From positions 62,001 to 126,000 of IMG/VR virus record IMGVR_UViG_3300028393_000019: a stretch of DNA of 64,000 nt; one strand, given 5' to 3'. The position numbers and the translations under genes are program-made. Below, piece after piece: positions 3,406-62,482 of this stretch (positions are counted from its first letter, which is position 1; each line of letters opens with the position of its first letter). The notes under the pieces are model-generated. The model was not told the DNA's origin and made no database searches. It saw nothing but the letters and a program-made list of their open reading frames with translations.

Positions 3406-3488
3406 GTGTATATGCACTTTTTGTTTTACAGGTGTAAAACAAATATAGGCACAAAAAGCAATCAAAGGCTATTAATAGGAGAACAATT

Positions 3489-37856: not shown

Positions 37857-38135
37857 TTAAACTATGCCGGGTTTATACTCTATGCAGTAAGCACATATGG
37901 CCATTACAACGACTAGGACAAGCCATGCCCATTTGCTGATAACTCCTTCATCTGAGTATCTACAGTAGTAACAGTCCATGTCTGGGTCGTAATGATAGAT
38001 TTTACCGTTGCGAGTTATAGTTTCATTATATAGATCATTCATAGAGTTACCTGTAGATGGTAGGTTAAAGACACGTCCTGTATGCATATTGAGCCATTCT
38101 GTGTCACTTAACTGCTTGTAGTCTTCTGAGTTCAT
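37857..38135 (-). CDS. Small membrane-anchored protein
   Basis: C-terminal hydrophobic helix. Confidence 0.65.
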   Translation of the reverse strand: MNSEDYKQLSDTEWLNMHTGRVFNLPSTGNSMNDLYNETITRNGKIYHYDPDMDCYYCRYSDEGVISKWAWLVLVVVMAICAYCIEYKPGIV

Positions 38136-38136
38136 A

Positions 38137-38343
38137 CTAGTGTTTCCTTAGATTAGCGCATATACCCGCGATAAGCGCATTGGGATTTGCACTATTGGCA
38201 TTGATACGCTCAATATCTTCTACAGCTACAGTATATAGCTCATGACGCTGAGCCAGTAGATAAAAACGATCTCTAAGCGTGGTAGCTTGAAATACACTGA
38301 CAACAGCGCCTATAATGCGAGCTAGAATGCGGGAATAGTCCAT
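38137..38343 (-). CDS. Small hypothetical protein
   Basis: 68-aa ORF; CTATATAC just upstream. Confidence 0.6.
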   Translation of the reverse strand: MDYSRILARIIGAVVSVFQATTLRDRFYLLAQRHELYTVAVEDIERINANSANPNALIAGICANLRKH

Positions 38344-38543
38344 ACAGTATATAGCACCCGAATGGGTCCTGTGGGTCTATTTCAGATTCGCGTAAAAAAT
38401 TATAAAGAAGTACTTACAGTTTTATGGTGGTGAAAATACTTCGGTACCCATGCGCTACTAGCTATGTTAGTGTGTACTTACATGTATAGCCCCTCACCCC
38501 TCTGTGTCGAGATGAATGCCATTCGGTCGCCGGTCGAGAGAAG

Positions 38544-38586
38544 AAAAAAAATCCCCACCACCGGGAGCGAATCGGATAGTGAGGAT
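38544..38586 (-). terminator. Intrinsic terminator whose loop is AUUCGCUCC
   Basis: 13-bp stem with 2 G.U pairs and one bulge, followed by a U-tract. Confidence 0.8.
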
Positions 38587-38695
38587 CAAAACGAGGATAT
38601 GCCTCGTTTTAGGTGGGCTAGACCTAGCGGGAGCGAATCGCGTTGATTGGTCTAGCCCTACTGCTAAGGGCGCTCTTATGTGTGTTGTTGTATAC
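38544..38695 (-). ncRNA. Candidate anti-RBS small RNA / structured 3' UTR with two AUUCGCUCC loops
   Basis: Three hairpins (38615-38658, 38588-38610, 38551-38586); G.U pairs and U-tract fix the minus strand; loops complementary to GGAGCGAA early RBSs. Confidence 0.65.
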
Positions 38696-39597
38696 TAGCG
38701 TGAGCCCCTCATGCATGTTACTTCTGCTACAGCTTGCCACTTGTCCGGGAAGCTGGCTGCCAAGTCTGCTACCTTGAGCACTGTGCGCAGGCTCAGCTCA
38801 CGCATGCGATGCTTGTTGGAATCCACGAATGCAACCACTTCCAGCTTCTTCTCGTCAGTGAGCTCGTATGAATCCAGCATGCCATGCTCGGTAACTACCT
38901 GCTTGATGCGTAACACCTTCTCGCGTTCAGTGTCGATGGTAAGGTCCAAATAGTGGCAACGGCTCTCTAGTGCTTCCAAGTGATCCTGTAGCTTCTTGCT
39001 TTTCACGTGATCGAACTTGATGTTGGTAATGAAGATCGCACCGCCCTTGAACTCGAATGTGTTGGGCACACCTTCACTACGTAGCAAGCGACTGTCTGTG
39101 TTCCACGAGATCGTACGCTTCTTTGACGTATCTAACGCGGCCTTCAAGATGTTTAGACTGAGATCATCCAACAGGATCGAATCACAGTCGTCGAACACTA
39201 GGATGCTCTTCTTGTCTGAGAACTCGTACAGCTTGCTATACAAGCCAATGGCACTCATAGCGCCTTTGACGATCTCGTACTTCTTCAGCTTCTGATCCTG
39301 TGCGATATCAGCCAGCACATCATGCTTTGACAGAACCTTCTCTACACCGTAGCTCTTGCCCACGCCTGGGGGGCCTGTCACGATCATAGCTCGCACATCG
39401 CCCTTCTTTACAGCACGAGTCATGTCATCCAAGATCTCAAAGCGATCACGTAGACGATTCAGGATCTGTTCATCTGACTCGTGTGCGATGTTCTTCTTTA
39501 CGGGTTCTTGCTCTAGGCTCGCTGTGGTGCCTTTGCTGGTTTTTGGCTGTTTCTGAAGTGCCATTAGCATCTTACTGGTAACTACCTTTGTTGTCAT
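38695..39597 (-). CDS. AAA+-type P-loop ATPase
   Basis: Walker A GPPGVGKS, Walker B LVFDDCD, IFITN, ALESR. Confidence 0.85.
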   Translation of the reverse strand: MTTKVVTSKMLMALQKQPKTSKGTTASLEQEPVKKNIAHESDEQILNRLRDRFEILDDMTRAVKKGDVRAMIVTGPPGVGKSYGVEKVLSKHDVLADIAQDQKLKKYEIVKGAMSAIGLYSKLYEFSDKKSILVFDDCDSILLDDLSLNILKAALDTSKKRTISWNTDSRLLRSEGVPNTFEFKGGAIFITNIKFDHVKSKKLQDHLEALESRCHYLDLTIDTEREKVLRIKQVVTEHGMLDSYELTDEKKLEVVAFVDSNKHRMRELSLRTVLKVADLAASFPDKWQAVAEVTCMRGSR

Positions 39598-39626
39598 ACA
39601 CGCTCCTGTGTTAAATTAATAATAGT

Positions 39627-39655
39627 ATTGTACAGTCTCGTTGAGTCTGTGTCAA
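39627..39655 (-). promoter_or_regulatory. sigma70 promoter TTGACA-17-TACAAT
   Basis: Read directly. Confidence 0.8.
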
Positions 39656-39975
39656 TCCAATCGGCTGCCTGCGTAGGCTGTCAAGCCCAAAGCCTTCAGA
39701 TAGTTGGCCAGGGCATAGGCGCCTGCTTCTTTGATGTCCACGTTTTGCACGGGCAGATCTCCCGGATTCCACATGCTCAAACACTTGGGTTTGTAGTCCT
39801 TCTTGAACCCCGCGGCAATCAATTCCTTAGCCTGCTTTGAGTTGGTACGGTCCACGTAGACATCAACCCAAGCAAAGCCGCAAGCGCCGCGATCTCCGCC
39901 CCACTTTTGATATTCGGCCATGCTGGCTTGTTTGGCCAATGGAATGCCTGCTTGGATCTGTTCTGCTGTAATCAT
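39652..39975 (-). CDS. Hypothetical early protein
   Basis: AGGAGCGAC RBS; GACGFAWV motif. Confidence 0.85.
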   Translation of the reverse strand: MITAEQIQAGIPLAKQASMAEYQKWGGDRGACGFAWVDVYVDRTNSKQAKELIAAGFKKDYKPKCLSMWNPGDLPVQNVDIKEAGAYALANYLKALGLTAYAGSRLD

Positions 39976-40009
39976 AAGTCGCTCCTATAATTGCGTTGTT
40001 GAAGTGTAT

Positions 40010-40038
40010 ATTATACTACCAAAGCGTGGGGTTGTCAA
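40010..40038 (-). promoter_or_regulatory. sigma70 promoter TTGACA-17-TATAAT
   Basis: Perfect consensus. Confidence 0.85.
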
Positions 40039-40204
40039 CCGGACGCTCAGTGCGTTTCAGCATGAGAACGCCACAGCCCATGGTTGCTAATCCCAGGATC
40101 GCTACAAGGACACAGTCCAGGACGGGACCACCGGTTTCGATCCCACCCACCGCAGCCATGGTTAGCAGTAGGCCTGTAAAGATTAAGAATGTGCTTGATT
40201 TCAT
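40016..40204 (-). CDS. Small two-helix membrane protein
   Basis: Two hydrophobic segments; AAGGAG RBS. Confidence 0.75.
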   Translation of the reverse strand: MKSSTFLIFTGLLLTMAAVGGIETGGPVLDCVLVAILGLATMGCGVLMLKRTERPVDNPTLW

Positions 40205-40533
40205 GCTAGCTCCTTGTGCAGATCGCAGTAGTCAACTTCAGGTTCTTTGTAGGTAATAGAACCTTCGTACTCCAGCTGGCTCCGCTCGAAGTCGCTAAGG
40301 TAGCCTTCTGCTTCCACGCGGAATCCCACGATGTACTCTCTGCAGTAGTCATTTGATCGCTCGATGGAGCCACGTGCCATCTCAACGATCTCTGCAGGAT
40401 CGATGTTGCGAGGTGTGTTGAGGATCTTGTAGCTGGAACCGCCCTTGAACTTCCAATACTGTGGGCAAGCACCTTCGCCGTCCCAATCATGGGCACCGTA
40501 GTTCTCCATGTACTGTGTGTCAATTACTAGCAT
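40201..40533 (-). CDS. Hypothetical early protein
   Basis: Start moved to 40533 (MLVIDTQYMENYGAHDW...YWKFKGG); AGGAGCGAA RBS. Confidence 0.85.
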   Translation of the reverse strand: MLVIDTQYMENYGAHDWDGEGACPQYWKFKGGSSYKILNTPRNIDPAEIVEMARGSIERSNDYCREYIVGFRVEAEGYLSDFERSQLEYEGSITYKEPEVDYCDLHKELA

Positions 40534-40564
40534 AGTTTCGCTCCTAGTTAGTGTGTAAAGTATT

Positions 40565-40593
40565 ATTATACTGCCGTTTGGCCCGTTTGTCAA
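40565..40593 (-). promoter_or_regulatory. sigma70 promoter TTGACA-17-TATAAT
   Basis: Perfect consensus. Confidence 0.85.
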
Positions 40594-40838
40594 CAGACTG
40601 TGTAGGTTTGTCCCAGGCTGTCCAGTGCTTCTTGTTGTATTTTAGCCACATACTTGTTCACAGTCTTCAGCGCCTTGCGCTCCTTCTCGTCCACGTCAGG
40701 ACAGCCGTAGTTGGCACGGAAGTTGACCCACGCACTGAGTGTGCCCGCTCGATCTACACCAGTCACAGATCCTTTAAAGGATTCCATGTAATTCAACCGA
40801 TCACCGTTCAACAGTTCTATTGCTTTGGATAGTTTCAT
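40590..40838 (-). CDS. Hypothetical early protein
   Basis: AGGAGCGAAC RBS. Confidence 0.8.
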   Translation of the reverse strand: MKLSKAIELLNGDRLNYMESFKGSVTGVDRAGTLSAWVNFRANYGCPDVDEKERKALKTVNKYVAKIQQEALDSLGQTYTVC

Positions 40839-40862
40839 AGTTCGCTCCTTCTTTGTTAATGT

Positions 40863-41114
40863 TCAGCAGTCTGGGTCAAAGCTCATCCACTCGTCGTACT
40901 CAGAGGGCTGACCGTCGTCCTCGTAGTCCATAGCACGTGGAAACTGATCCTCGGGCTCAGGGGCTTCGCAGATCACCACTTCACCATCGGAATCAAGCTC
41001 AACCCGAGGATGGCTGTAGCCATCGTAGGTCTCGTAACTGCCACGCAAGATCACGTGGGCATCCTGTGGCATTTGCTCCAATGCCTTGATCAAGTCTCTT
41101 ACTGTAGTTGTCAT
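40863..41114 (-). CDS. Hypothetical early protein
   Basis: AGGAGCGAG RBS; EYDEWMSFDPDC C-terminus. Confidence 0.8.
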   Translation of the reverse strand: MTTTVRDLIKALEQMPQDAHVILRGSYETYDGYSHPRVELDSDGEVVICEAPEPEDQFPRAMDYEDDGQPSEYDEWMSFDPDC

Positions 41115-41250
41115 ATCTCGCTCCTTCTCTTGTTCAGCTTAGGCCGAGTCTCCAAACTCGCTTCGTATCCCTTGGCTACGACCCTTTTTGCATTTCTGCG
41201 TGGGTCCTTGCATTTGAGGATCGCCTTGCTTTCTAACTGTTCATGTGCTT

Positions 41251-41279
41251 ATTATAGCTTCAAAAAATAACCCGCGCAA
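41251..41279 (-). promoter_or_regulatory. sigma70-like promoter TTGCGC-17-TATAAT overlapping terminator
   Basis: Read directly. Confidence 0.6.
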
Positions 41280-41292
41280 CCGGCGGGTTATT
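41262..41292 (-). terminator. Intrinsic terminator after tRNA
   Basis: AATAACCCGC/GCGGGTTATT stem plus T-run. Confidence 0.8.
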
Positions 41293-41293
41293 C

Positions 41294-41370
41294 TGGTGGG
41301 CCCACCTGGACTCGAACCAGGGACCAAAGGATTATGAGTCCTCTGCTCTAACCAACTGAGCTATAGGCCC
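41294..41370 (-). tRNA. tRNA with CAU anticodon, probably tRNA-Ile2 (lysidine type)
   Basis: GGGCCTATAGCTCAGTTGGTTAGAGCAGAGGACTCATAATCCTTTGGTCCCTGGTTCGAGTCCAGGTGGGCCCACCA; encoded CCA; C4-G69 and C5-G68 pairs as in Ile2 rather than Met. Confidence 0.92.
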
Positions 41371-41546
41371 GTAAATCGGTTGACTTCTACTGGATCTTGC
41401 CCGTCTTCATCTTTGAGGATGTAGACTTCTTCGCATTCCCACATGTGATCTTCAGCTATCAGCTCGGCTTCTTTGAGGGTAGCAACACAATCGATCAGCT
41501 CATCTCGCCCATCGATTGTGCCCCAAACTTCATACTGAACGAACAT
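41361..41546 (-). CDS. Small acidic hypothetical protein
   Basis: 61-aa ORF; 3' end overlaps tRNA 5' end by 10 nt. Confidence 0.65.
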   Translation of the reverse strand: MFVQYEVWGTIDGRDELIDCVATLKEAELIAEDHMWECEEVYILKDEDGQDPVEVNRFTGL

Positions 41547-41548
41547 GT

Positions 41549-41911
41549 TTAGGCTGTGAACGGAGTGTTCTCGTCTTCGGTCACTGCAGGTGCAGCCTTG
41601 ACTGCCTTGGTGGTCTTAGCTGTAGCGGTCTTGGCCACTGCTTTGACAACTGCTGTTGCCTTGGGAGCCTTCTCATCCAAGTACTCCGTGATAGCTGCCT
41701 GAGCATGTGCTCCTGAGAAATCATCCATGCCTTTGATGGCTTGAATACCTGCATACTTGGTGTATGGCTTCTCGAGATCTACCAAGGTGATATCCTCGTG
41801 ACCATGTTTAGCTAGCACCTTGATGCGCATCACATCATTTGCGAAACGTACCTTGTACTCACCGTTGAGCTTTGATACACCAAAAACGTTATACTGTTTA
41901 TCTGTTGCCAT
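41549..41911 (-). CDS. Hypothetical protein with Ala/Lys-rich tail
   Basis: GAGG RBS; KVRFAND motif. Confidence 0.85.
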   Translation of the reverse strand: MATDKQYNVFGVSKLNGEYKVRFANDVMRIKVLAKHGHEDITLVDLEKPYTKYAGIQAIKGMDDFSGAHAQAAITEYLDEKAPKATAVVKAVAKTATAKTTKAVKAAPAVTEDENTPFTA

Positions 41912-41969
41912 GTTGTTACCTCTATGTGTGTGGTTTAAGTTGTTATGCCAGTTTCCTTAGCATGTGTTA

Positions 41970-41998
41970 ATTGTACTATCTTTTGGTCTGCTTGTCAA
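41970..41998 (-). promoter_or_regulatory. sigma70 promoter TTGACA-17-TACAAT
   Basis: Read directly. Confidence 0.8.
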
Positions 41999-42260
41999 CC
42001 AATTTCTTCATCTTTTGGACATCTTTTCGGCTAGTTGCCACGGGTAGCGGCTTGCCAAACTCTCTGTCCAAATAGTGTGCCAGCATCTTGCCCTTGATGT
42101 TGGTAACCAGATCAAACTGGTCCTGATCAGGGCAGATGAACCGATACGGGCTGTGTCCCCAGCTCATCGTCTTGAGAAACTGATTGAACAGTCTGCGATG
42201 CTCTTTGATGTCCACGTCGAACTCAACCAGCGGTCGCAGATGGAAATCAAGTAGGCTCAC
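41976..42260 (-). CDS. Hypothetical protein
   Basis: GTG start; SWGHSPYRF motif. Confidence 0.7.
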   Translation of the reverse strand: MSLLDFHLRPLVEFDVDIKEHRRLFNQFLKTMSWGHSPYRFICPDQDQFDLVTNIKGKMLAHYLDREFGKPLPVATSRKDVQKMKKLVDKQTKR

Positions 42261-42387
42261 AGGGCCTCTCTTTCCACTGCTTGATCACTTGAGCTAGCGG
42301 TTCGAAGTTCCACTCTCGGATCTTGGGGCGAATGCGATCGGTCTGCTTCTGATCGTGCTCTTTATTCTTCTGCTGGTTGGTCTTCAT
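42247..42387 (-). CDS. Small hypothetical protein (46 aa, not in the ORF track)
   Basis: GAGG RBS; fills the gap between neighbours. Confidence 0.5.
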   Translation of the reverse strand: MKTNQQKNKEHDQKQTDRIRPKIREWNFEPLAQVIKQWKERPCEPT

Positions 42388-42961
42388 TGGTTTCCTCTTC
42401 ATATTCTGCTACTGTTTCTGAAATGCCCATACAGTCATCTAACGCTGTAGGGATCGATTCTCTGATCTGCTCAGAGGTCATTGCTGTGATATCGTAGTAG
42501 TCATCACCGTTCTCGTCGTAGATCCCGCAGAATCCCATGCCCGACTCATAGTAGTAGGCCCGAACTGTGTAGCCCTGCTCCATCAATGCTTCATAGACTC
42601 CACAGGGTGGGGCCCACGCACTGTCGAAGCCGAATGTGACGCCAGTCTTGCCATCATGTGCATCGTCGTATTCCACTGCTTCGTAGGGTTCTACATCCCA
42701 CTTGGTGCCCCACTCGTTCACGCAGTAGTCATACCAAGTGCTGTAGCCATACTTCTCAAGGTTGGACTTCTCTGCTGCCTCAAGAGCGATCTGCTCGGGA
42801 TTGTCAGCGGAACCAACTCGACCCGCTACAATGTGCAGTTCTTTGGGCACAGGCTTGGCAAAGTCGCAGAACTTGCCTTCGTTGATCGCACCTACCAACT
42901 CATACATCTTCGCAGGGTCAGTGTGGTTAATCTCTACTGTGTTGTTGCACCAATTAGGCAT
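42362..42961 (-). CDS. DUF1281/YubB ferredoxin-like family protein
   Basis: MPNWCNN, WYDYCVNEWGTKWD, FDSAWAPP and YYESGMGFCG. Confidence 0.75.
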   Translation of the reverse strand: MPNWCNNTVEINHTDPAKMYELVGAINEGKFCDFAKPVPKELHIVAGRVGSADNPEQIALEAAEKSNLEKYGYSTWYDYCVNEWGTKWDVEPYEAVEYDDAHDGKTGVTFGFDSAWAPPCGVYEALMEQGYTVRAYYYESGMGFCGIYDENGDDYYDITAMTSEQIRESIPTALDDCMGISETVAEYEEETNEDQPAEE

Positions 42962-42987
42962 ACGCTGTTCTCCTAAGTTAAAACACT

Positions 42988-43016
42988 ATTATACAACCAA
43001 AAGGCCTAGAAGTCAA
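42988..43016 (-). promoter_or_regulatory. sigma70 promoter TTGACT-17-TATAAT
   Basis: Read directly. Confidence 0.8.
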
Positions 43017-43029
43017 CCGTTGTTTCTAC

Positions 43030-43174
43030 GCCACAGAATAAGTTCCGGGAGGGTTTTGGGAAGTCTCACCCGGGTCGACTAGCAGGTTTTGTAGGGTCTC
43101 TTATGAATCGCTAACCTATGGCTAGCCCTACAGGAACGCACTTGTCCCTCAGCGATGTCTAGGAGCGAACTAGC
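43030..43174 (-). ncRNA. Second candidate anti-RBS element
   Basis: Non-coding; CUAG-UUCGCUC-CUAG hairpin; shares short motifs with the 38544 element. Confidence 0.4.
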
Positions 43175-43343
43175 TGTTTACCGTAGCATTAGGGCTGAAT
43201 TCTTCATCCTGGATACCATTCAAGGTCAACCAATCGTAGACCATCTCTACGGGTATGTCCAAGGTCTTGGCTATGTTCTTCTCGGTCAAGCCCTCGATGT
43301 AGAGTTGCTCGATGTCATATGCGATTTCTGATAGTTTACTCAT
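43170..43343 (-). CDS. Small HTH-like protein (57 aa, not in the ORF track)
   Basis: MSKLSEIAYDIEQLYIEGLTEKNIAKTLDIPVEMVYDWL. Confidence 0.7.
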   Translation of the reverse strand: MSKLSEIAYDIEQLYIEGLTEKNIAKTLDIPVEMVYDWLTLNGIQDEEFSPNATVNS

Positions 43344-43512
43344 CATTCATTTCCTCTGGTAGATATGCAATTAAGTTGCTTCTGGGAACACTCTTTAACA
43401 GCTCTTCAACAGCAGTTAGATCCCCACCCTCGAGATCTACAGCGATCTGATCTAGAACCCGGTCGATCAAGTCCGATAGGGCTACAGCTCGTTTAGTTTC
43501 AAATCCAGTCAT
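43336..43512 (-). CDS. Small hypothetical protein (58 aa, not in the ORF track)
   Basis: AAGGAG RBS; coupled to the downstream ORF. Confidence 0.7.
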   Translation of the reverse strand: MTGFETKRAVALSDLIDRVLDQIAVDLEGGDLTAVEELLKSVPRSNLIAYLPEEMNDE

Positions 43513-43524
43513 TCTATCTCCTTG

Positions 43525-44013
43525 CTAAACAGCGGGGCCGGTCTTGGCCTTTTGCTTGAGGGCTGTGAGCACACGCTTCCAGCGACCACTTTCACGAGTA
43601 CGGTAGAACCACTTGCCCGACTCTAGGCTGTCATCGTAGCGATACAGGTAGAAGTATTCGCACCATGAACCCTGGTAGTGATCTACAGCAGTTGCGGCGG
43701 ATTCAAAGCTCTTGTAGGGAGCATCTTCGCCGCGATCACGTGAGTAGAAGGTGGTCATATCGCCGTAGAGCTTCTCGTACTCATCTTCGGGTAACTCGCT
43801 GTCCAGCCTTGAGAACTCGTGCTTGATGCCGATCTCGGCTCGCAGTGAGCTGATGTCGCCCAGGGCGATCAAGTTGTTGACCTTAGGGCTAGCACCGTAG
43901 TTGTTCTCTAAGATCTCGCCGTTGTGTTCAAGGTAGCCATCCCAGTGGCAGTAGACGGCCTTGACACGACCACTACTAGGGTTCTCAATACCAATCATTG
44001 ATCTAGTACCCAT
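43525..44013 (-). CDS. Phage hypothetical protein (MGTRS...YCHWDGY type)
   Basis: Start moved to 44013; GGAGG RBS. Confidence 0.85.
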   Translation of the reverse strand: MGTRSMIGIENPSSGRVKAVYCHWDGYLEHNGEILENNYGASPKVNNLIALGDISSLRAEIGIKHEFSRLDSELPEDEYEKLYGDMTTFYSRDRGEDAPYKSFESAATAVDHYQGSWCEYFYLYRYDDSLESGKWFYRTRESGRWKRVLTALKQKAKTGPAV

Positions 44014-44014
44014 A

Positions 44015-44221
44015 TCAGCCTCCGAACACTTCTTTGTTAAGGATCTCGTTCTCAACCAAGTCGTAGCAAGCATTCATCGCTTGAGTCACGAAGGTGTAGA
44101 CCAGGGCCTTTTCTTTGGCCGGCAGTTGCTCAATGCGCTCCTGCAGTTCGGGCAAAGTGGGGGTGTAGAAGAACCCATTGCGTGGAATTGGGTTTTGCAC
44201 TTGATCGTAAATACCTGACAT
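44015..44221 (-). CDS. Hypothetical early protein
   Basis: AGGAGCGAA RBS. Confidence 0.8.
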   Translation of the reverse strand: MSGIYDQVQNPIPRNGFFYTPTLPELQERIEQLPAKEKALVYTFVTQAMNACYDLVENEILNKEVFGG

Positions 44222-44253
44222 AAGTTTCGCTCCTTCTGTGTGTGTAAGTGTAT

Positions 44254-44282
44254 ATTATAACACGGGCCAGGGCCCGTGTCAA
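44254..44282 (-). promoter_or_regulatory. sigma70 promoter TTGACA-17-TATAAT with palindromic spacer
   Basis: ACACGGGCC-AG-GGCCCGTGT at 44260-44279. Confidence 0.85.
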
Positions 44283-44289
44283 TCTATAG

Positions 44290-44643
44290 TTAAATACCCT
44301 GGAACGCAGTAAGGGCTTCTTGTGCGCCCGCATCCAAATACACCGCATCCATAGCCTTTTGCTTCTCACGTGCTACAGTTGCACGATACACTTCCAGCTC
44401 TGCGCTCTTAGCTTCCATAGCAGGCCACACAACATCAGAGGGGTTAAGGTAAGGACCCGTGTAGTCTACCTTGTCTGCCTTCAGCGTAATGTCGCCGCTC
44501 TTAATGCCTTCAAACACCATGCCCCACGTGGGCTGTTGCGGACGACCGCTGGCACCAAACAGTTCTACTGCCTTAGCCTGCACCTTAGCCTGTGCTACTT
44601 CGTTAAGACGACGAACAAAATACTCTCGAGATTGTGCTTCCAT
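44290..44643 (-). CDS. Hypothetical early protein
   Basis: Start moved to 44643; AGGAGCGAA RBS. Confidence 0.8.
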   Translation of the reverse strand: MEAQSREYFVRRLNEVAQAKVQAKAVELFGASGRPQQPTWGMVFEGIKSGDITLKADKVDYTGPYLNPSDVVWPAMEAKSAELEVYRATVAREKQKAMDAVYLDAGAQEALTAFQGI

Positions 44644-44653
44644 TTTTCGCTCC

Positions 44654-44776
44654 TTAGTTTGCTGTGTTGTAAACTCTGTACTTGCCTTCTGCATCGTAAT
44701 ACCAAACGCCGCCTATGTTGTGGTATCCTTTTTTGCGGAATAGTGTTGCATAATATTTCGCGTAATTAAATGCCAT
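44654..44776 (-). CDS. Small protein (40 aa, MAFNYAKYYATLFRKKG..., not in the ORF track)
   Basis: AAGGAAG RBS directly after a promoter; stop abuts the next RBS. Confidence 0.65.
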   Translation of the reverse strand: MAFNYAKYYATLFRKKGYHNIGGVWYYDAEGKYRVYNTAN

Positions 44777-44802
44777 CTTACTTCCTTTGTTGCTAAGTGT
44801 AT

Positions 44803-44831
44803 ATTATAGCACCAAACTAAAGCCCTGTCAA
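44803..44831 (-). promoter_or_regulatory. sigma70 promoter TTGACA-17-TATAAT
   Basis: Perfect consensus. Confidence 0.85.
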
Positions 44832-44842
44832 CCCCAGGGTCT

Positions 44843-45106
44843 TTACATACTCCAGTAGCTCTCACTGGCGGGCGAGCAATAGTAGGGCGTGTCGTAACGC
44901 TCTGTGAACCGGCCCCCACCCATCATGTTGGTCTTCTCGACCATAGTCACGTGGATCTCACAACGATAGCCCTCACTGGCCGGGTACTTGCGAGCATAGA
45001 CCTCTTGGATAGCACCACGATCAGCAGTGCTATGGTCTACCTTGCGATCCAGTCGCTCCCCGGACTTTCGACGGGCATCACGTTTATAAACTTCTACTGT
45101 GTACAT
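44843..45106 (-). CDS. Hypothetical early protein
   Basis: AGGAGCGAAC RBS; TPYYCSPASESYWSM C-terminus. Confidence 0.85.
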   Translation of the reverse strand: MYTVEVYKRDARRKSGERLDRKVDHSTADRGAIQEVYARKYPASEGYRCEIHVTMVEKTNMMGGGRFTERYDTPYYCSPASESYWSM

Positions 45107-45139
45107 AAGTTCGCTCCTTATCTAACTGTCTAAGCATTA

Positions 45140-45168
45140 ATTATAGTGCCAAATCAGTTGTGTGTCAA
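45140..45168 (-). promoter_or_regulatory. sigma70 promoter TTGACA-17-TATAAT
   Basis: Perfect consensus. Confidence 0.85.
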
Positions 45169-45386
45169 CCCCAGGCCTTGAATAACCCGAATAGGCATAT
45201 GGTTAATGCTACTACGTTGGTAACCAATTGTGGCTTATTTGCCACACGTATGCTCCAGATCAAGTAGCAGATCCCGCCCATGAATCCAGCCACGATGTTC
45301 CATGGATAGATGTCAAAGCTCATGAGCGTATACATGGCCAGGAAGCATCCAGTGCCGATCCACTGGATGATGTCGTTGAACTTCAA
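45165..45386 (-). CDS. Small three-helix membrane protein
   Basis: Hydrophobic pattern. Confidence 0.75.
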   Translation of the reverse strand: MKFNDIIQWIGTGCFLAMYTLMSFDIYPWNIVAGFMGGICYLIWSIRVANKPQLVTNVVALTICLFGLFKAWG

Positions 45387-46087
45387 GCCGCTTCCTTCAA
45401 ATGGATCACGAACCCACTGTAGTCCTTCTTGGCACGACCCTTGGCTTTCAACCCAATGATGCCTACCCGGGGGTCTAAGAAGCGCAGATCATCTTCATCC
45501 GCACTGTACACACCTTCGGGGATCCGGTCGTAGACCACGGCAACATTCATGCCCTGAGCCACTGCCTTGGGAATGTCTGCGGCATTGGATTCAGCACGGC
45601 TGAACGTGAGGTGATAGTTGGGGATATGTGCGGTCTTGCGTCCTAGGATCTTGGTATAGTCATAGAACTGTACTGTAGGGAACATTTGGAAGATGTTCAA
45701 GCCAGTGTCGCCGATCGTGTACTTTTCCCACGCTAGATCACTAGTACCGTTCAAGCGGAACACGGGCTTTAGGCCCTGCTTACGGGCATAATTAATAGCC
45801 TTGTCGATGTCATTGGTTAGATCCTTCATGAAAGCATCACGATCGAAGAAGAATGCAACCGTCTTGCGTATACGTGCTCGCTGTATAACGTTGGTGTTCT
45901 CACCCCGCTTGAACATGCCCCCACGTCCAGCAGTGTTGAGACAGCTAGCAATGCATCCAGGGGTAGCCTTGGGACAGGTGTTGTGACCGCTCAGGGTGCT
46001 GGGCGCGAGATGCAGGATGAAGCTTAGATAGCCCCGAGCCGTGCCCTTTTGGATCTTGGGGTTAGCTGTACTCAGTAGTTTAAACAT
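45383..46087 (-). CDS. GP88/DUF7227-like phage protein
   Basis: CP.A..GC...CL, RLNGTSD, FYDYTK and YHLTFS motifs; AGGAGCGAAC RBS. Confidence 0.65.
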   Translation of the reverse strand: MFKLLSTANPKIQKGTARGYLSFILHLAPSTLSGHNTCPKATPGCIASCLNTAGRGGMFKRGENTNVIQRARIRKTVAFFFDRDAFMKDLTNDIDKAINYARKQGLKPVFRLNGTSDLAWEKYTIGDTGLNIFQMFPTVQFYDYTKILGRKTAHIPNYHLTFSRAESNAADIPKAVAQGMNVAVVYDRIPEGVYSADEDDLRFLDPRVGIIGLKAKGRAKKDYSGFVIHLKEAA

Positions 46088-46119
46088 GGTTCGCTCCTTG
46101 TTTTGCAGTGTAAGTGTAT

Positions 46120-46148
46120 ATTATACTGTCAATCGATCTGTATGTCAA
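46120..46148 (-). promoter_or_regulatory. sigma70 promoter TTGACA-17-TATAAT
   Basis: Perfect consensus. Confidence 0.85.
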
Positions 46149-46326
46149 CCACTTGACCCTTTGAAAAGATCCAGTATTCGTTGATAGGGCACGAGCTGGA
46201 TCCAGATGATACCCAAACACACGCATTGCCTGGTTGCACTACCGCATGCTCGGTTCCCCGTTCTAGTAGCCGAGCCAGCACTACCAGTAGCTCAAACTCG
46301 TTGACTCCGGGCCTTACTTCAACCAT
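46129..46326 (-). CDS. Small hypothetical protein
   Basis: Start moved to 46326 (MVEVRPGVNEFELL). Confidence 0.65.
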   Translation of the reverse strand: MVEVRPGVNEFELLVVLARLLERGTEHAVVQPGNACVWVSSGSSSCPINEYWIFSKGQVVDIQID

Positions 46327-46327
46327 A

Positions 46328-46531
46328 TCAACCCCAATCTTTGAAGTCACCGTTGCGCTCGTTGTCCATGTAGCCCTGCCAATAGGCTGCCACTTCTGCC
46401 TCTGTGAGCTCTGTGACGGGTTCACCATTGTAAGTGCCCTGGGGATATTTGTGTGGACGAGCTGGACGACGGTAGTAGCTGTCTGCACTACCTCTATCAT
46501 AGCATCCGCCATGTACTCGATCTATAACCAT
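46328..46531 (-). CDS. Small hypothetical protein
   Basis: GAGGAG RBS; HGGCYDRGSADSYY motif. Confidence 0.8.
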   Translation of the reverse strand: MVIDRVHGGCYDRGSADSYYRRPARPHKYPQGTYNGEPVTELTEAEVAAYWQGYMDNERNGDFKDWG

Positions 46532-46557
46532 TTTTCTGCTCCTCTAACTAAAACACT

Positions 46558-46586
46558 ATTATAACGCCAAAAGGCACTGCTGTCAA
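46558..46586 (-). promoter_or_regulatory. sigma70 promoter TTGACA-17-TATAAT
   Basis: Perfect consensus. Confidence 0.85.
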
Positions 46587-46613
46587 GCAATGCCCTTAGA
46601 CTCTACAGGGTTA

Positions 46614-46994
46614 TTACAGTTCCATACTAGCGTAGCCGTCGTCTTGCATGCCCTGCTCTGTAAAGCTAACACTAGTCCCTAGCAAGTCGCTTACAGCCGC
46701 CTCAAAGCCCGTGTCTGTGTACATTCGCCAGCTTCCCTCTACATCAGCGCCGTCTACGCCGTCTACGTCATAGCAGACTGCAATGTGTGTGCTAATGTCG
46801 CCATCGCCGTCGTAGTCTGTCTCTGCAATGTGTATGCTTGTAATTGTAACTTCCTCAATGTCGCAGTCCCACATACTGTCGCCTGCAAGTTGTACTTTTA
46901 CTCGGCACTTGTACTCCGTGTTAACAGTGTCGTCTTCTTGTTTAACTTCTACTCTTTTTAGTTTTTTACTAACTTTAAACTGTGTTGCTTGCAT
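46614..46994 (-). CDS. Acidic hypothetical early protein
   Basis: AGGAGCGAA RBS; YTDTGFE...FTEQGMQ motif. Confidence 0.85.
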   Translation of the reverse strand: MQATQFKVSKKLKRVEVKQEDDTVNTEYKCRVKVQLAGDSMWDCDIEEVTITSIHIAETDYDGDGDISTHIAVCYDVDGVDGADVEGSWRMYTDTGFEAAVSDLLGTSVSFTEQGMQDDGYASMEL

Positions 46995-47016
46995 AAGTTT
47001 CGCTCCTTAAAAAACA

Positions 47017-61966: not shown

Positions 61967-62482
61967 ATGGCAGATACTCTGCTACTTAATGCTGATGGCT
62001 TGCCCGTAAGTTACATGCCATTAAGCACACTAATTTGGGAAGACGCTATCAAATACATGGTTCTAGACAAGGCCGATGTGTTGATGTGGCATGACGATTG
62101 GATTGTACATTCAGCCACGTGGGAAACGCCTGTACCCAGTGTTATGATGCTTCGTGAATACATGAAGCCAAAAGTCACAGTTCGATTCAGTCGTGCCAAT
62201 ATCTATCTACGTGACAATGCCACTTGTGCCTACTGTTTGAAACCTGTTGAACGCAAAGTGGCCACTCTGGATCATGTGCTACCGGTCAGCAAAGGCGGCA
62301 AGACCACTTGGGAAAACTGTGTAACAGCCTGTGCACCATGTAACAGTCACAAGAGTGATACTACCAAAGGATGGAAGCCCAAATTCAAACCTTACAAGCC
62401 AGACTTCTACGAACTAGTAAATAAGCGTAAGAAAGAAGCATTTAACTTAAGGTACGAAGAATGGCTACAATTCATCCGGTAA
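61967..62482 (+). CDS. HNH endonuclease (McrA-like)
   Basis: RD..TCAYC, TLDHVLP.SKGG..TWENCV.AC..CN..K. Confidence 0.92.
   Translation: MADTLLLNADGLPVSYMPLSTLIWEDAIKYMVLDKADVLMWHDDWIVHSATWETPVPSVMMLREYMKPKVTVRFSRANIYLRDNATCAYCLKPVERKVATLDHVLPVSKGGKTTWENCVTACAPCNSHKSDTTKGWKPKFKPYKPDFYELVNKRKKEAFNLRYEEWLQFIR

Follow-up and report, generated by a model that had tools for sequence, protein, structure and literature searches.

A block of early genes in a freshwater jumbo phage (IMG/VR record IMGVR_UViG_3300028393_000019) carries an odd extension of the Shine-Dalgarno sequence, GGAGCGAA, and the question raised by this locus is what reads it. We analysed a window of 64,000 nucleotides, corresponding to positions 62,001 to 126,000 of the record, to which all coordinates refer unless stated otherwise. 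A previous sequence-only reading had counted eleven copies of the 8-mer, seven of them at ribosome-binding positions, and had proposed that it is a recognition tag for an sRNA seed, a RegA-like repressor, or a RegB-like nuclease. According to our analysis, the tag is the exact complement of two hairpin loops in the untranslated tail of a neighbouring gene, and tag and loops change together in related phages.

An extended Shine-Dalgarno sequence in a cluster of early genes

The observation holds. GGAGCGAA has 11 exact matches in the window, whereas dinucleotide shuffles give a mean of 1.03 and a maximum of 3, and AGGAGCG has 16 matches against 3.5 expected. Seven copies of the 8-mer, at the coordinates given in the sequence-only reading, sit 6 to 8 nt before start codons. 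All ten gene starts listed in the sequence-only reading (39597, 39975, 40533, 40838, 41114, 44221, 44643, 45106, 46087, and 46994, minus strand) have AGGAGCG 5 to 8 nt upstream of an ATG-initiated open reading frame (ORF). The sites, all on the minus strand, are as follows.

39601 to 39607: AGGAGCGUG, the site of the AAA-ATPase gene 38695 to 39597 (300 aa, phrog_1250, function unknown); it is only a partial match (GGAGCGUG).
39979 to 39986: AGGAGCGAC, the site of the 107-aa gene 39652 to 39975 (phrog_22149), behind a consensus promoter; 28 of 32 distinct orthologous upstream regions keep GGAGCGA.
40537 to 40545: AGGAGCGAA, the site of the 110-aa gene 40201 to 40533, behind a consensus promoter; 22 of 26 orthologous upstream regions keep GGAGCGA.
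40841 to 40849: AGGAGCGAA, the site of the 82-aa gene 40590 to 40838, an internal gene with no promoter of its own.
41118 to 41125: AGGAGCGAG, the site of the 83-aa internal gene 40863 to 41114.
44226 to 44234: AGGAGCGAA, the site of the 68-aa gene 44015 to 44221, behind a consensus promoter; 7 of 8 orthologous upstream regions keep the tag.
44646 to 44654: AGGAGCGAA, the site of the 117-aa internal gene 44290 to 44643; all 5 orthologous upstream regions keep GGAGCG.
45110 to 45118: AGGAGCGAA, the site of the 87-aa gene 44843 to 45106, behind a consensus promoter; conservation is weaker here (2 of 7 orthologous upstream regions).
46090 to 46098: AGGAGCGAA, the site of the 234-aa GP88-family gene 45383 to 46087, behind a consensus promoter; 6 of 7 orthologous upstream regions keep the tag.
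46999 to 47007: AGGAGCGAA, the site of the 126-aa gene 46614 to 46994, behind a consensus promoter.

The motif is local, since the whole 265,680-bp record has only 14 copies of the 8-mer. With a crude gene caller, GGAGCG was found at the ribosome-binding site of 7 of 16 called cluster genes against 2 of 344 elsewhere (Fisher P = 2.7e-9), and other sigma70-driven genes and the large structural genes lack it. The contrasting motif AGGAGAA, which had been attributed to replication genes, is present at 3477 and 4516, but its count is at chance level (7 against 5.9 expected). The description of the tagged genes as promoter-proximal early genes is only partly right. Seven of the ten lie directly behind a near-consensus TTGACA-N17-TATAAT promoter, whereas three (40838, 41114, and 44643) are internal, two further predicted targets lie 50 to 70 kb away, and half of the sigma70-driven genes in the cluster lack the tag.

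The sequence-only reading was right that the CGAA extension is not explained by 16S pairing. Only 14 of 146 GGAG-type sites in the genome continue with G, as 16S pairing would favor, and closely related phages use different extensions (CGAA, GCA, and CUAG) on canonical cores that are all subwindows of AAGGAGG, so that an explanation by the host 16S fails. It may still be asked whether the extension has no regulatory partner, being either a relic of the recent duplication of one promoter-leader-site cassette or a translation-efficiency feature such as spacing, an enhancer, or pairing to an unusual host 16S tail. Several leaders do share the word ATACACTTA after the -10 box, which suggests some cassette similarity. 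However, the tag is kept before orthologues at 39 to 89% protein identity while the leaders diverge, and it precedes promoterless internal genes. We therefore deem this possibility very unlikely.

A structured 3' untranslated region displays the complement of the tag

Of the four remaining copies of the 8-mer, on which the sequence-only reading did not comment, three (38564, 38630, and 43162 on the plus strand) read UUCGCUCC on the gene strand and lie in noncoding RNA, whereas the fourth (22770) is inside a 2,305-aa ORF and is probably due to chance. [quoted passage not shown] Its parts, all on the minus strand, are as follows.

38544 to 38694: noncoding 3'UTR element directly after the AAA-ATPase stop codon, with three hairpins plus a U-tract; the candidate anti-Shine-Dalgarno RNA.
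38615 to 38658: hairpin 1, with stem GGGCUAGACC/GGUCUAGCCC and a large loop holding GCG-AUUCGCUCC-CGC, the anti-tag being at 38630 to 38637.
38588 to 38610: hairpin 2, a spacer hairpin AAAACGAGG/CCUCGUUUU, absent in the short-form relatives.
38544 to 38587: hairpin 3, an intrinsic terminator with the loop CCG-AUUCGCUCC-CGG, the anti-tag being at 38564 to 38571, followed by U8 (38544 to 38551).

The predicted fold has three hairpins at -57.8 kcal/mol (z = -3.76 against shuffles), and Rfam has no matching family. No sigma70-like promoter precedes the element in 64 of 65 distinct relatives' elements, where the first loop lies a median of 52 nt after the stop. The spacing between the two loops falls into two groups, 43 to 53 nt and 61 to 84 nt. 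The loop sequence AUUCGCUCC pairs perfectly with GGAGCGAA(U), that is, with the Shine-Dalgarno core GGAG plus the otherwise unexplained CGAA, although the inner closing stem of the loops is only 3 bp. The loop-site duplex is predicted at about -14 kcal/mol, against -6.5 to -8.5 kcal/mol for the 16S tail on the same sites, the tail not having been read directly from the host, which is unknown. For the site at 40537 to 40545, the values are -14.1 and -6.5 kcal/mol.

Conservation and covariation in related phage loci

We examined about 150 related metagenomic phage loci. About 65 of the first 80 carry one or two GAUUCGCUCCC loops within 260 nt of the AAA stop codon. This loop 11-mer, present in hairpin 1, is identical in all 25 aligned relatives while the stems differ, and according to RNAalifold, 8 of 10 terminator stem pairs show compensatory changes. 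The closing pairs covary as CG/UA/GC. In 44 distinct elements, the 8-mer has a mean unpaired probability of 0.87, against 0.44 with shuffled flanks (P = 3e-43).

Strand and position are also biased. Across 1.45 Mb of related loci, GGAGCGA occurs 453 times on the gene strand, 423 of them at ribosome-binding-site spacing, whereas TCGCTCC on the gene strand occurs 167 times within 1.5 kb after the AAA stop and 29 times elsewhere. In the 138 deduplicated loci, the counts are 145 in the 1.5 kb after the stop and 0 in the 1.5 kb before it. These data bear on the possibility that the word is an operator for a DNA-binding protein, which would read double-stranded DNA in either orientation, so that tag and loop would be the same site and would covary trivially when the protein's specificity changes. 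Such a site would indeed reproduce the class-wise covariation described below. However, orientation is strictly partitioned, with sense copies at ribosome-binding sites and antisense copies in the 3'UTR; the tag keeps a constant distance to the AUG (5 to 8 nt) but a variable distance to the -10 box (10 to 24 nt), and it also precedes internal genes, which points to an RNA-level rather than a promoter-level feature. Furthermore, the antisense copies are kept unpaired in hairpin loops with covarying stems or, in one class, are single stranded next to a terminator, none of which has meaning for a DNA site. We regard the operator reading as very improbable.

Where the loop sequence differs, the ribosome-binding sites differ to match. 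Four matched pairs of sites and loops were found, namely, GGAGCGAA/UUCGCUCC, GAGGGCA/UGCCCUC, AGGAGCUAR/YUAGCUCCU, and UGUUGAAAGGCU/AGCCUUUCAACA. Class B loci have UGCCCUC loops and (G)AGGGCA sites on 5 to 10 genes each. Class C loci have CUAGCUCCU, UUAGCUCCU, or GUUAGCUCCU loops matched one to one by the AAA sites AGGAGCUAG, AGGAGCUAA, or AGGAGCUAAC. Class F loci have a single-stranded AGCCUUUCAACA before a terminator, against the site UGUUGAAAGGCU. The cross-table of dominant site class against loop class is 70/7/1 on the diagonal with nothing off it, i.e., no locus mixes one class of site with another class of loop. However, one related locus, L205, has class A loops while most of its sites read GGAGCA, GGAGCC, or GGAGCU, giving only 5 to 6 bp. 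On the AAA-protein tree, class A lies on both sides of the midpoint root and classes B, C, and F are nested, implying at least three independent switches. Since the classes are phylogenetically clustered, the number of independent events is small (about 3, plus fine variants within class C).

The one orthologous upstream region of the GP88-family gene that does not keep the tag comes from the class B lineage and reads GAGGGCAA, which matches the loops of that lineage. In most relatives, the AAA gene's own site is a full match to the loop downstream, unlike the partial match seen in this phage. Finally, 33 of 45 loci with the element have an enriched extended Shine-Dalgarno 7-mer, against 2 of 13 loci without it (P = 2.7e-4), so that loci without the element mostly lack any enriched extension.

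A putative anti-Shine-Dalgarno RNA

Of the three options offered by the sequence-only reading, our evidence supports the RNA partner, so that its interpretation is partly supported, with specifics that it could not see. We think, with fair confidence, that the GGAGCGA(A) tag is the target site of a phage-encoded anti-Shine-Dalgarno RNA, residing in the roughly 150-nt structured 3'UTR that ends the AAA-ATPase mRNA. Its predicted targets are about ten neighboring early mRNAs, the AAA mRNA itself, and two distant genes (record positions 160001 and 172206), the complementarity extending to 17 nt for the gene at 172206. The duplex would cover the Shine-Dalgarno sequence and is predicted to be about twice as stable as pairing with the 16S tail. 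In this view, the RNA, either as the full mRNA tail or as a processed 3'UTR-derived sRNA, should keep 30S subunits off these mRNAs and, as it accumulates, would shut down a subset of early proteins and feed back on its own gene. While the complementarity, the loop presentation, the conservation, and the covariation are shown by our analysis, and pairing is strongly supported, the expression and accumulation of the RNA, the repressive direction (deduced from the position of the duplex), and the timing are inferred. There is no direct evidence that the 3'UTR accumulates or is processed; the lake metatranscriptome runs hold the region only as assembled contigs, whose depth profile mirrors that of a DNA run. 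In distant relatives, only the AAA gene's own ribosome-binding site matches the 3'UTR, so that the ancestral circuit looks like a 5'-3' UTR autoregulatory loop, which in this lineage and in class B was extended to a regulon.

All the pairing evidence fits either sign of regulation. Pairing might instead protect the Shine-Dalgarno region of early mRNAs from a GGAG-specific or other endonuclease, or open an inhibitory leader structure, and so stabilize or activate these mRNAs; T4 RegB shows that GGAG in early Shine-Dalgarno sequences can be a nuclease target (PMC3014915). We consider this unlikely, since the duplex covers the Shine-Dalgarno core itself, 5 to 8 nt from the AUG, which blocks initiation according to established knowledge of 30S binding, since the leaders are short (20 to 35 nt) and A-rich with no obvious inhibitory structure, and since no RegB homologue was found in the record, which is only about 72% complete.

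The alternative that a phage RNA-binding protein recognizes the extended sequence, either a RegA-like translational repressor or a RegB-like nuclease, with the complementary loops being unrelated or acting as a decoy, has a precedent in T4, which uses both proteins on early mRNAs (PMC3014915), and many small proteins of this phage have no known function. No RegA (PF01818) or RegB (PF10715) homologue was found in the record, which is weak negative evidence since the record is only about 72% complete and the control genomes gave no signal either. However, a protein reading single-stranded GGAGCGAA would not bind its complement UUCGCUCC, and the strictly antisense loops that switch together with the tag in four classes would remain unexplained. 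We deem this alternative improbable.

Comparison with described systems

The element would work like the c4 RNA of phages P1 and P7 and the icaR 3'UTR, but it belongs to no described family. The c4 antisense RNA (Rfam C4 family, summarized in PMC12197685) is likewise a phage-encoded structured RNA made from the same transcript as its target, with loops that are complementary to the ribosome-binding region of the target and block its translation, and loop and target differ between related phages by matched changes. However, c4 lies upstream of its single target operon (icd-ant) in temperate phages and controls immunity, whereas here the element is a 3'UTR with a terminator in what look like lytic jumbo phages, matches about a dozen ribosome-binding sites in separate transcription units, and shows no sequence or Rfam similarity to c4. 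In the icaR mRNA of Staphylococcus aureus (PMC3868564), an anti-Shine-Dalgarno motif in the 3'UTR pairs with the Shine-Dalgarno sequence of the same gene and represses translation, and classes C and F, as well as the AAA gene in most class A and B loci, have exactly this layout. That circuit is bacterial and concerns a single gene, whereas here the anti-Shine-Dalgarno sequence is displayed twice in hairpin loops and, in two lineages, addresses many other mRNAs through a private extension of the Shine-Dalgarno sequence.

The C-rich-loop sRNAs of Gram-positive bacteria, 6C (PMC6486639), RsaE/RoxS, RNAIII, and SprX, also have several hairpins whose loops pair with G-rich Shine-Dalgarno regions of multiple mRNAs, using loop presentation rather than a 5' single-stranded seed. 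Their loops (CCCC or UCCC) target generic Shine-Dalgarno-like sequences of host genes, whereas here 3 to 4 extra nucleotides make the pairing specific to a phage-defined gene set, and the RNA is phage encoded and 3'UTR borne. Other 3'UTR-derived phage noncoding RNAs are ncRNA1 and ncRNA2 of PAK_P3 (PMC10914365), for which that paper gives no targets or seed logic; they have no sequence relation to the element, and the phage and host group differ. The T4 RegA repressor and RegB endoribonuclease (PMC3014915) share the presumed purpose, i.e., posttranscriptional shutoff of a subset of early mRNAs through their ribosome-binding regions, but they are proteins.

A third copy of the complement

The remaining noncoding copy may be a second anti-Shine-Dalgarno site.

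43158 to 43173, minus strand: CUAG-UUCGCUC-CUAG mini-hairpin, whose 5' CUAG overlaps the stop codon of the 58-aa ORF 43170 to 43346.

The surrounding 190 nt show no significant fold (z = -0.39). The same CTAG-(T/A)(T/G)TCGCTC-CTAG word recurs at the equivalent place in the related loci L135, L169, L183, and L250.

Distribution of the tag in the phage record

The record under study, of 265,680 bp (42% G+C, about 72% complete), comes from a freshwater metagenome, and the window is its bases 62001-126000. Within the window, GGAGCGAA occurs 11 times against 1.03 expected from dinucleotide shuffles, and AGGAGCG occurs 16 times against 3.5. The sequence-only reading had described a regulon-like extended Shine-Dalgarno tag on promoter-proximal early genes, and every coordinate that it listed was confirmed: ten minus-strand ORFs between 38695 and 46994 have AGGAGCG 5-8 nt before their ATG, and seven of them have the full GGAGCGAA. 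Seven of the ten lie behind near-perfect TTGACA-N17-TATAAT promoters, while three are internal genes. The motif is local, as the whole record has only 14 copies, and CGAA is the commonest 4-mer after GGAG at ribosome-binding sites (RBS) genome-wide only because of this cluster. According to a crude gene call, GGAGCG is found at 7 of 16 cluster genes against 2 of 344 elsewhere (p = 2.7e-9). Of the 46 near-consensus sigma70 promoters across the genome, only those in the 100-110 kb block and one at 159.9 kb are followed by the tag, which therefore marks a subset of sigma70-driven genes and not all of them; as a negative counterpart to the tagged leaders, 42961 has AGGAGAAC. Four of the consensus sigma70 promoters (window 40010, 44254, 44803 and 46120, minus strand) share the initial transcribed word ATACACTTA right after the -10 box, whether or not the gene carries the tag, which may reflect a constraint on the transcription start region or a shared ancestry of promoters.

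The complementary element in the 3'UTR of the AAA-ATPase gene

The sequence-only reading did not comment on the copies in the opposite orientation. Three of them (38564, 38630 and 43162 on the plus strand) read UUCGCUCC on the gene strand and lie in non-coding sequence, whereas a fourth (22770) is inside a 2305-aa ORF and is probably due to chance. The features relevant here are as follows.

38695-39597, minus strand: AAA-ATPase gene (300 aa, phrog_1250)
The 150 nt following its stop codon: three hairpins, with the anti-tag copies at 38564 and 38630
38544-38587, minus strand: hairpin 3 plus U8, an intrinsic terminator
38344-38543, minus strand: about 200 nt of non-coding sequence between the terminator U-tract and the next ORF (38137-38343)
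43158-43173, minus strand: CUAG-UUCGCUC-CUAG mini-hairpin with the anti-tag copy at 43162
41294-41370, minus strand: tRNA-Met (CAT)

The stretch after the AAA-ATPase stop codon folds into three hairpins (z = -3.76), of which hairpins 1 and 3 display AUUCGCUCC in their loops, closed by GCG/CGC and CCG/CGG, respectively. Hairpin 3 is a GC-rich hairpin followed by U8 and is thus an intrinsic (Rho-independent) terminator; T-runs also follow the last loop in the relatives. The loop is the exact complement of GGAGCGAA(U), and perfect matches of 8-9 nt to at least nine RBSs, together with a 17-nt match to one, were found. The mini-hairpin at 43158-43173, which contains the third anti-tag copy, overlaps the stop codon of a 58-aa ORF with a helix-turn-helix-like sequence, and the word is conserved in at least four related loci (L135, L169, L183 and L250); however, this site shows no significant fold, and neither does the 150-nt non-coding stretch that follows it.

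A search of the whole window against Rfam returned no hit at the gathering threshold apart from a tRNA, and permissive thresholds gave only chance-level hits (E of 1.6 or higher) on the element itself, so that the element matches neither the C4 antisense RNA family nor any other Rfam family. No record of a cultured phage holds the element. By its AAA-ATPase, the nearest cultured relative is the Pseudomonas jumbo phage PA5oct (46.6% identity), which has no hairpin after its homologue, and T4-like phages are further away. At the DNA level, similarity of the region to known phages is limited to the tRNA-Met (Pseudomonas and Acinetobacter phage tRNAs), which is embedded in the early gene block and followed by a terminator-like hairpin. 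When four sequencing runs from the lake, three of them RNA, were compared with window 38000-41000, the region was present only as assembler contigs, and the depth steps at about 38460 occurred in the DNA run too, so they reflect strain variation and not transcript ends. Contigs of both DNA and RNA runs break at 38458-38462, within the non-coding stretch downstream of the terminator, which suggests a strain-variable junction there.

Conservation of the element in related loci

In IMG/VR, the AAA protein finds 123 related loci with one protein as the query and more than 515 with an alignment, of which we analyzed 152 loci covering 1.45 Mb. A scan of IMG/VR with the bare 15-mer gave more than 120 hits, which we judged to be close to what chance might give for a 15-mer in a collection of that size, and only the two-copy loci and the protein-anchored loci were used. 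In about 65 of the first 80 loci, one or two GAUUCGCUCCC words lie within 260 nt of the stop, and their closing pairs change in a compensatory way. In 127 distinct hairpins the G-C closing pair is invariant, whereas the next two pairs covary (CG/UA/GC). An alignment of 25 three-hairpin elements shows both loop 11-mers to be identical in every sequence, while 8 of 10 terminator pairs have double changes. Furthermore, in 44 elements the 8-mer is kept unpaired, with a mean probability of 0.87 against 0.44 with shuffled flanks (p = 3e-43). No sigma70-like promoter precedes the element in 64 of 65 distinct cases, and the first loop lies a median 52 nt after the stop; the element is therefore the 3'UTR of the AAA mRNA. 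Some relatives (L179:290-350 and L194:1020-1110) carry an additional cluster of two or three GAUUCGCUCCC hairpins about 6 kb upstream of the AAA gene, so the anti-Shine-Dalgarno module exists in more than one copy per genome in some phages.

On the gene strand of these loci, GGAGCGA occurs 453 times, 423 of them at RBS spacing, while TCGCTCC occurs 167 times in the 1.5 kb after the AAA stop and 29 times elsewhere. Whether the tag is selected or merely a copied cassette was examined by locating orthologues of four targets by tblastn in the related loci. GGAGCGA is kept in 28/32, 22/26, 7/8, and 6/7 distinct upstream regions, at 39-89% protein identity, while the surrounding leaders differ, and this rules out recent duplication of one cassette. 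A relative with class-A loops (AUUCGCUCC and CUUCGCUCC), L205:1-6000, has early genes that mostly read AAGGAGCA, AAGGAGCC, or AAGGAGCU rather than GGAGCGA, and may represent a lineage in which the regulon is decaying or has not been acquired.

Covariation between loops and ribosome-binding sites

The loops and the tag change together between relatives, and besides class A, the class of the present phage, three further allele classes were recognized, as listed below.

Allele classes of loop and RBS in the related loci
Class B: a lineage with 74-80% AAA identity among its members (loci L198-L200 and L211-L215); two hairpin loops reading UGCCCUC after the AAA stop; in the same loci, 5-10 genes per locus, including the AAA gene, have the RBS (G)AGGGCA(A); the class-B orthologue of the GP88-family target reads GAGGGCAA
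Class C: eight more distant loci; a hairpin loop (C/U)UAGCUCCU that matches the AAA gene's own RBS, with one-to-one fine variation (AGGAGCUAG with CUAGCUCCU, AGGAGCUAA with UUAGCUCCU, AGGAGCUAAC with GUUAGCUCCU); one locus has a 13-nt match with a single bulge
Class F: three loci; a single-stranded AGCCUUUCAACA just before a terminator hairpin, complementary to the AAA RBS UGUUGAAAGGCU over 10-12 nt

Over 138 non-identical loci, a cross-table of the dominant RBS class against the loop class gives 70, 7, and 1 on the diagonal and none off it, and the class-A anti-word occurs 145 times downstream and 0 times in the equal-sized upstream control. On a quick maximum-likelihood tree of the AAA protein, class A lies on both sides of the midpoint root, B is nested beside the main A clade, and C and F are clades in the other half, so that at least three switches occurred, each with a matched RBS change, although the covariation rests on a small number of independent lineages. 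Loci with any such element show an enriched extended Shine-Dalgarno 7-mer in 33 of 45 cases, against 2 of 13 without (p = 2.7e-4, not corrected for phylogeny). A global longest-complement statistic between the AAA RBS and the 300 nt downstream was only modestly above controls (6.8 against 5.5-6.1); in many lineages the element lies further downstream or is absent, and the statistic was replaced by the class-wise tables. The AAA gene's own site matches the loop in classes A, B, C, and F, with no promoter preceding the element in 64 of 65 cases, which is the arrangement of an autoregulatory mRNA of the icaR type; in the present window, however, this match is partial (GGAGCG).

We also considered a T-loop or tRNA-like reading and a CsrA-sponge reading of the loops, both of which were dropped because the loops hold CUCC rather than GGA and the B, C, and F alleles share no such motif. 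A YUNR U-turn (UUCG) fits class A loops only.

Predicted mechanism and alternative explanations

What the analysis demonstrates is that a conserved, accessible RNA segment in the AAA 3'UTR is complementary to the Shine-Dalgarno core plus a lineage-specific extension, that in this phage the matched sites belong to the AAA gene (partially) and to about a dozen other phage genes, and that the two sides co-evolve; that the RNA accumulates as a defined species, that pairing alters translation or stability of the targets, and that the outcome is repression are, instead, inferences. The duplex would lie 5-8 nt from the AUG, within the 30S footprint, and its predicted energy is about -14 kcal/mol, against -6.5 to -8.5 for the canonical 16S tail on the same sites, so the RNA should compete with ribosomes and repress translation. 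The element is deemed to be co-transcribed with an early gene and is highly structured. The simplest model is delayed negative feedback, in which, as the RNA accumulates, either as the full mRNA or as a processed 3'UTR fragment and with or without Hfq or another chaperone, a chosen subset of early proteins and the AAA protein itself would be turned down. Since in classes C and F only the AAA gene's own RBS matches, the ancestral circuit looks like a 5'-3' UTR autoregulatory loop that grew into a regulon in classes A and B. The targets are small proteins of unknown function, apart from a GP88-family protein and the AAA-ATPase.

The interpretation offered by the sequence-only reading, namely, a recognition tag for an sRNA seed, a RegA-like repressor, or a RegB-like nuclease, was supported only in part, as the evidence favors an RNA partner. 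A protein reading single-stranded GGAGCGAA, such as RegA or RegB, does not explain the strictly antisense, co-switching loops, and no homologue of RegA (PF01818) or RegB (PF10715) was found in the 265-kb record, although the record is about 72% complete and the control genomes gave no signal. A DNA-binding protein would explain the co-switching but not the strict partition of orientations, the fixed distance to the AUG with variable distance to the promoter, or the RNA-hairpin presentation. Pairing with the 16S rRNA is excluded on general grounds, since the conserved tail pairs with GGAGGUGA and not with GGAGCGAA, and, in addition, close relatives use different extensions on canonical cores. 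However, a positive effect of pairing, by protection or activation, cannot be excluded, and we regard it as the main residual uncertainty.

A further reading, which the data allow but which we consider speculative and rather unlikely, is that related jumbo phages carry private, mutually orthogonal "translation address codes," each lineage having co-evolved its own extension of the Shine-Dalgarno sequence on a chosen set of early genes together with a matching 3'UTR RNA (alleles A, B, C, and F). Besides timing early-gene shut-off, this would let a resident phage silence or ignore the early genes of a co-infecting relative, depending on the allele, and it would amount to an RNA-based heteroimmunity or superinfection-exclusion system in lytic phages, analogous to c4 in P1/P7 but regulon-wide.

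Comparison with known regulatory systems

Translational shut-off of early genes in virulent phages is known mainly from the T4 proteins RegA and RegB, and RNA-based control of a phage's own genes is known mainly from single-target antisense RNAs of temperate phages. Here, instead, a large, uncultured family of freshwater jumbo phages, with more than 500 related loci in IMG/VR, appears to solve the same problem differently, as these phages seem to use a 3'UTR RNA that reads a custom extension of the Shine-Dalgarno sequence, and the four allele classes, as natural "compensatory mutants," already support the pairing. In its inferred action the element resembles the c4 RNA of P1/P7, with loops against a ribosome-binding region, made from the target's own transcript, and matched differences between phages (PMC12197685). 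It likewise resembles the icaR 3'UTR anti-Shine-Dalgarno sequence (PMC3868564), while its multi-loop display is similar to that of C-rich-loop sRNAs such as 6C (PMC6486639) and its likely biogenesis to that of the 3'UTR-derived ncRNAs of phage PAK_P3 (PMC10914365). Our literature searches returned no description of a regulon-wide anti-Shine-Dalgarno RNA in virulent or jumbo phages. The finding provides a concrete explanation for non-16S extensions of RBSs in phage genomes and a case where an autoregulatory 5'-3' UTR loop seems to have grown into a regulon. It also provides a set of small, naturally orthogonal tag/anti-tag pairs that, because the promoters are sigma70 consensus, could be tested directly in E. 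coli reporters and reused as translational switches.

Tagged sites outside the early gene block

Two more tagged RBSs lie far away in the record, as follows.

160001, plus strand: tagged RBS
172206, minus strand: tagged RBS, complementary to hairpin 3 over 17 nt, covering the loop plus its closing stem

The latter belongs to a gene outside the window, at 171925-172222 of the record (locus L009:1426-1723, minus strand), encoding a 93-aa, very highly conserved small membrane-like protein (phrog_18771, more than 580 relatives at 85-100% identity), and about 17 of 80 relatives keep CCGGGAGCGAA(UCG) at this site. The gene is preceded by an ATAAATAC word rather than a sigma70 promoter, so the RNA may also control a non-early gene. 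In the whole record, ATAAATAC occurs 17 times, below the composition expectation, and 13 of these copies lie 5-60 nt upstream of a called start on the same strand; it may be a phage-specific middle or late promoter word resembling the T4 late TATAAATA.
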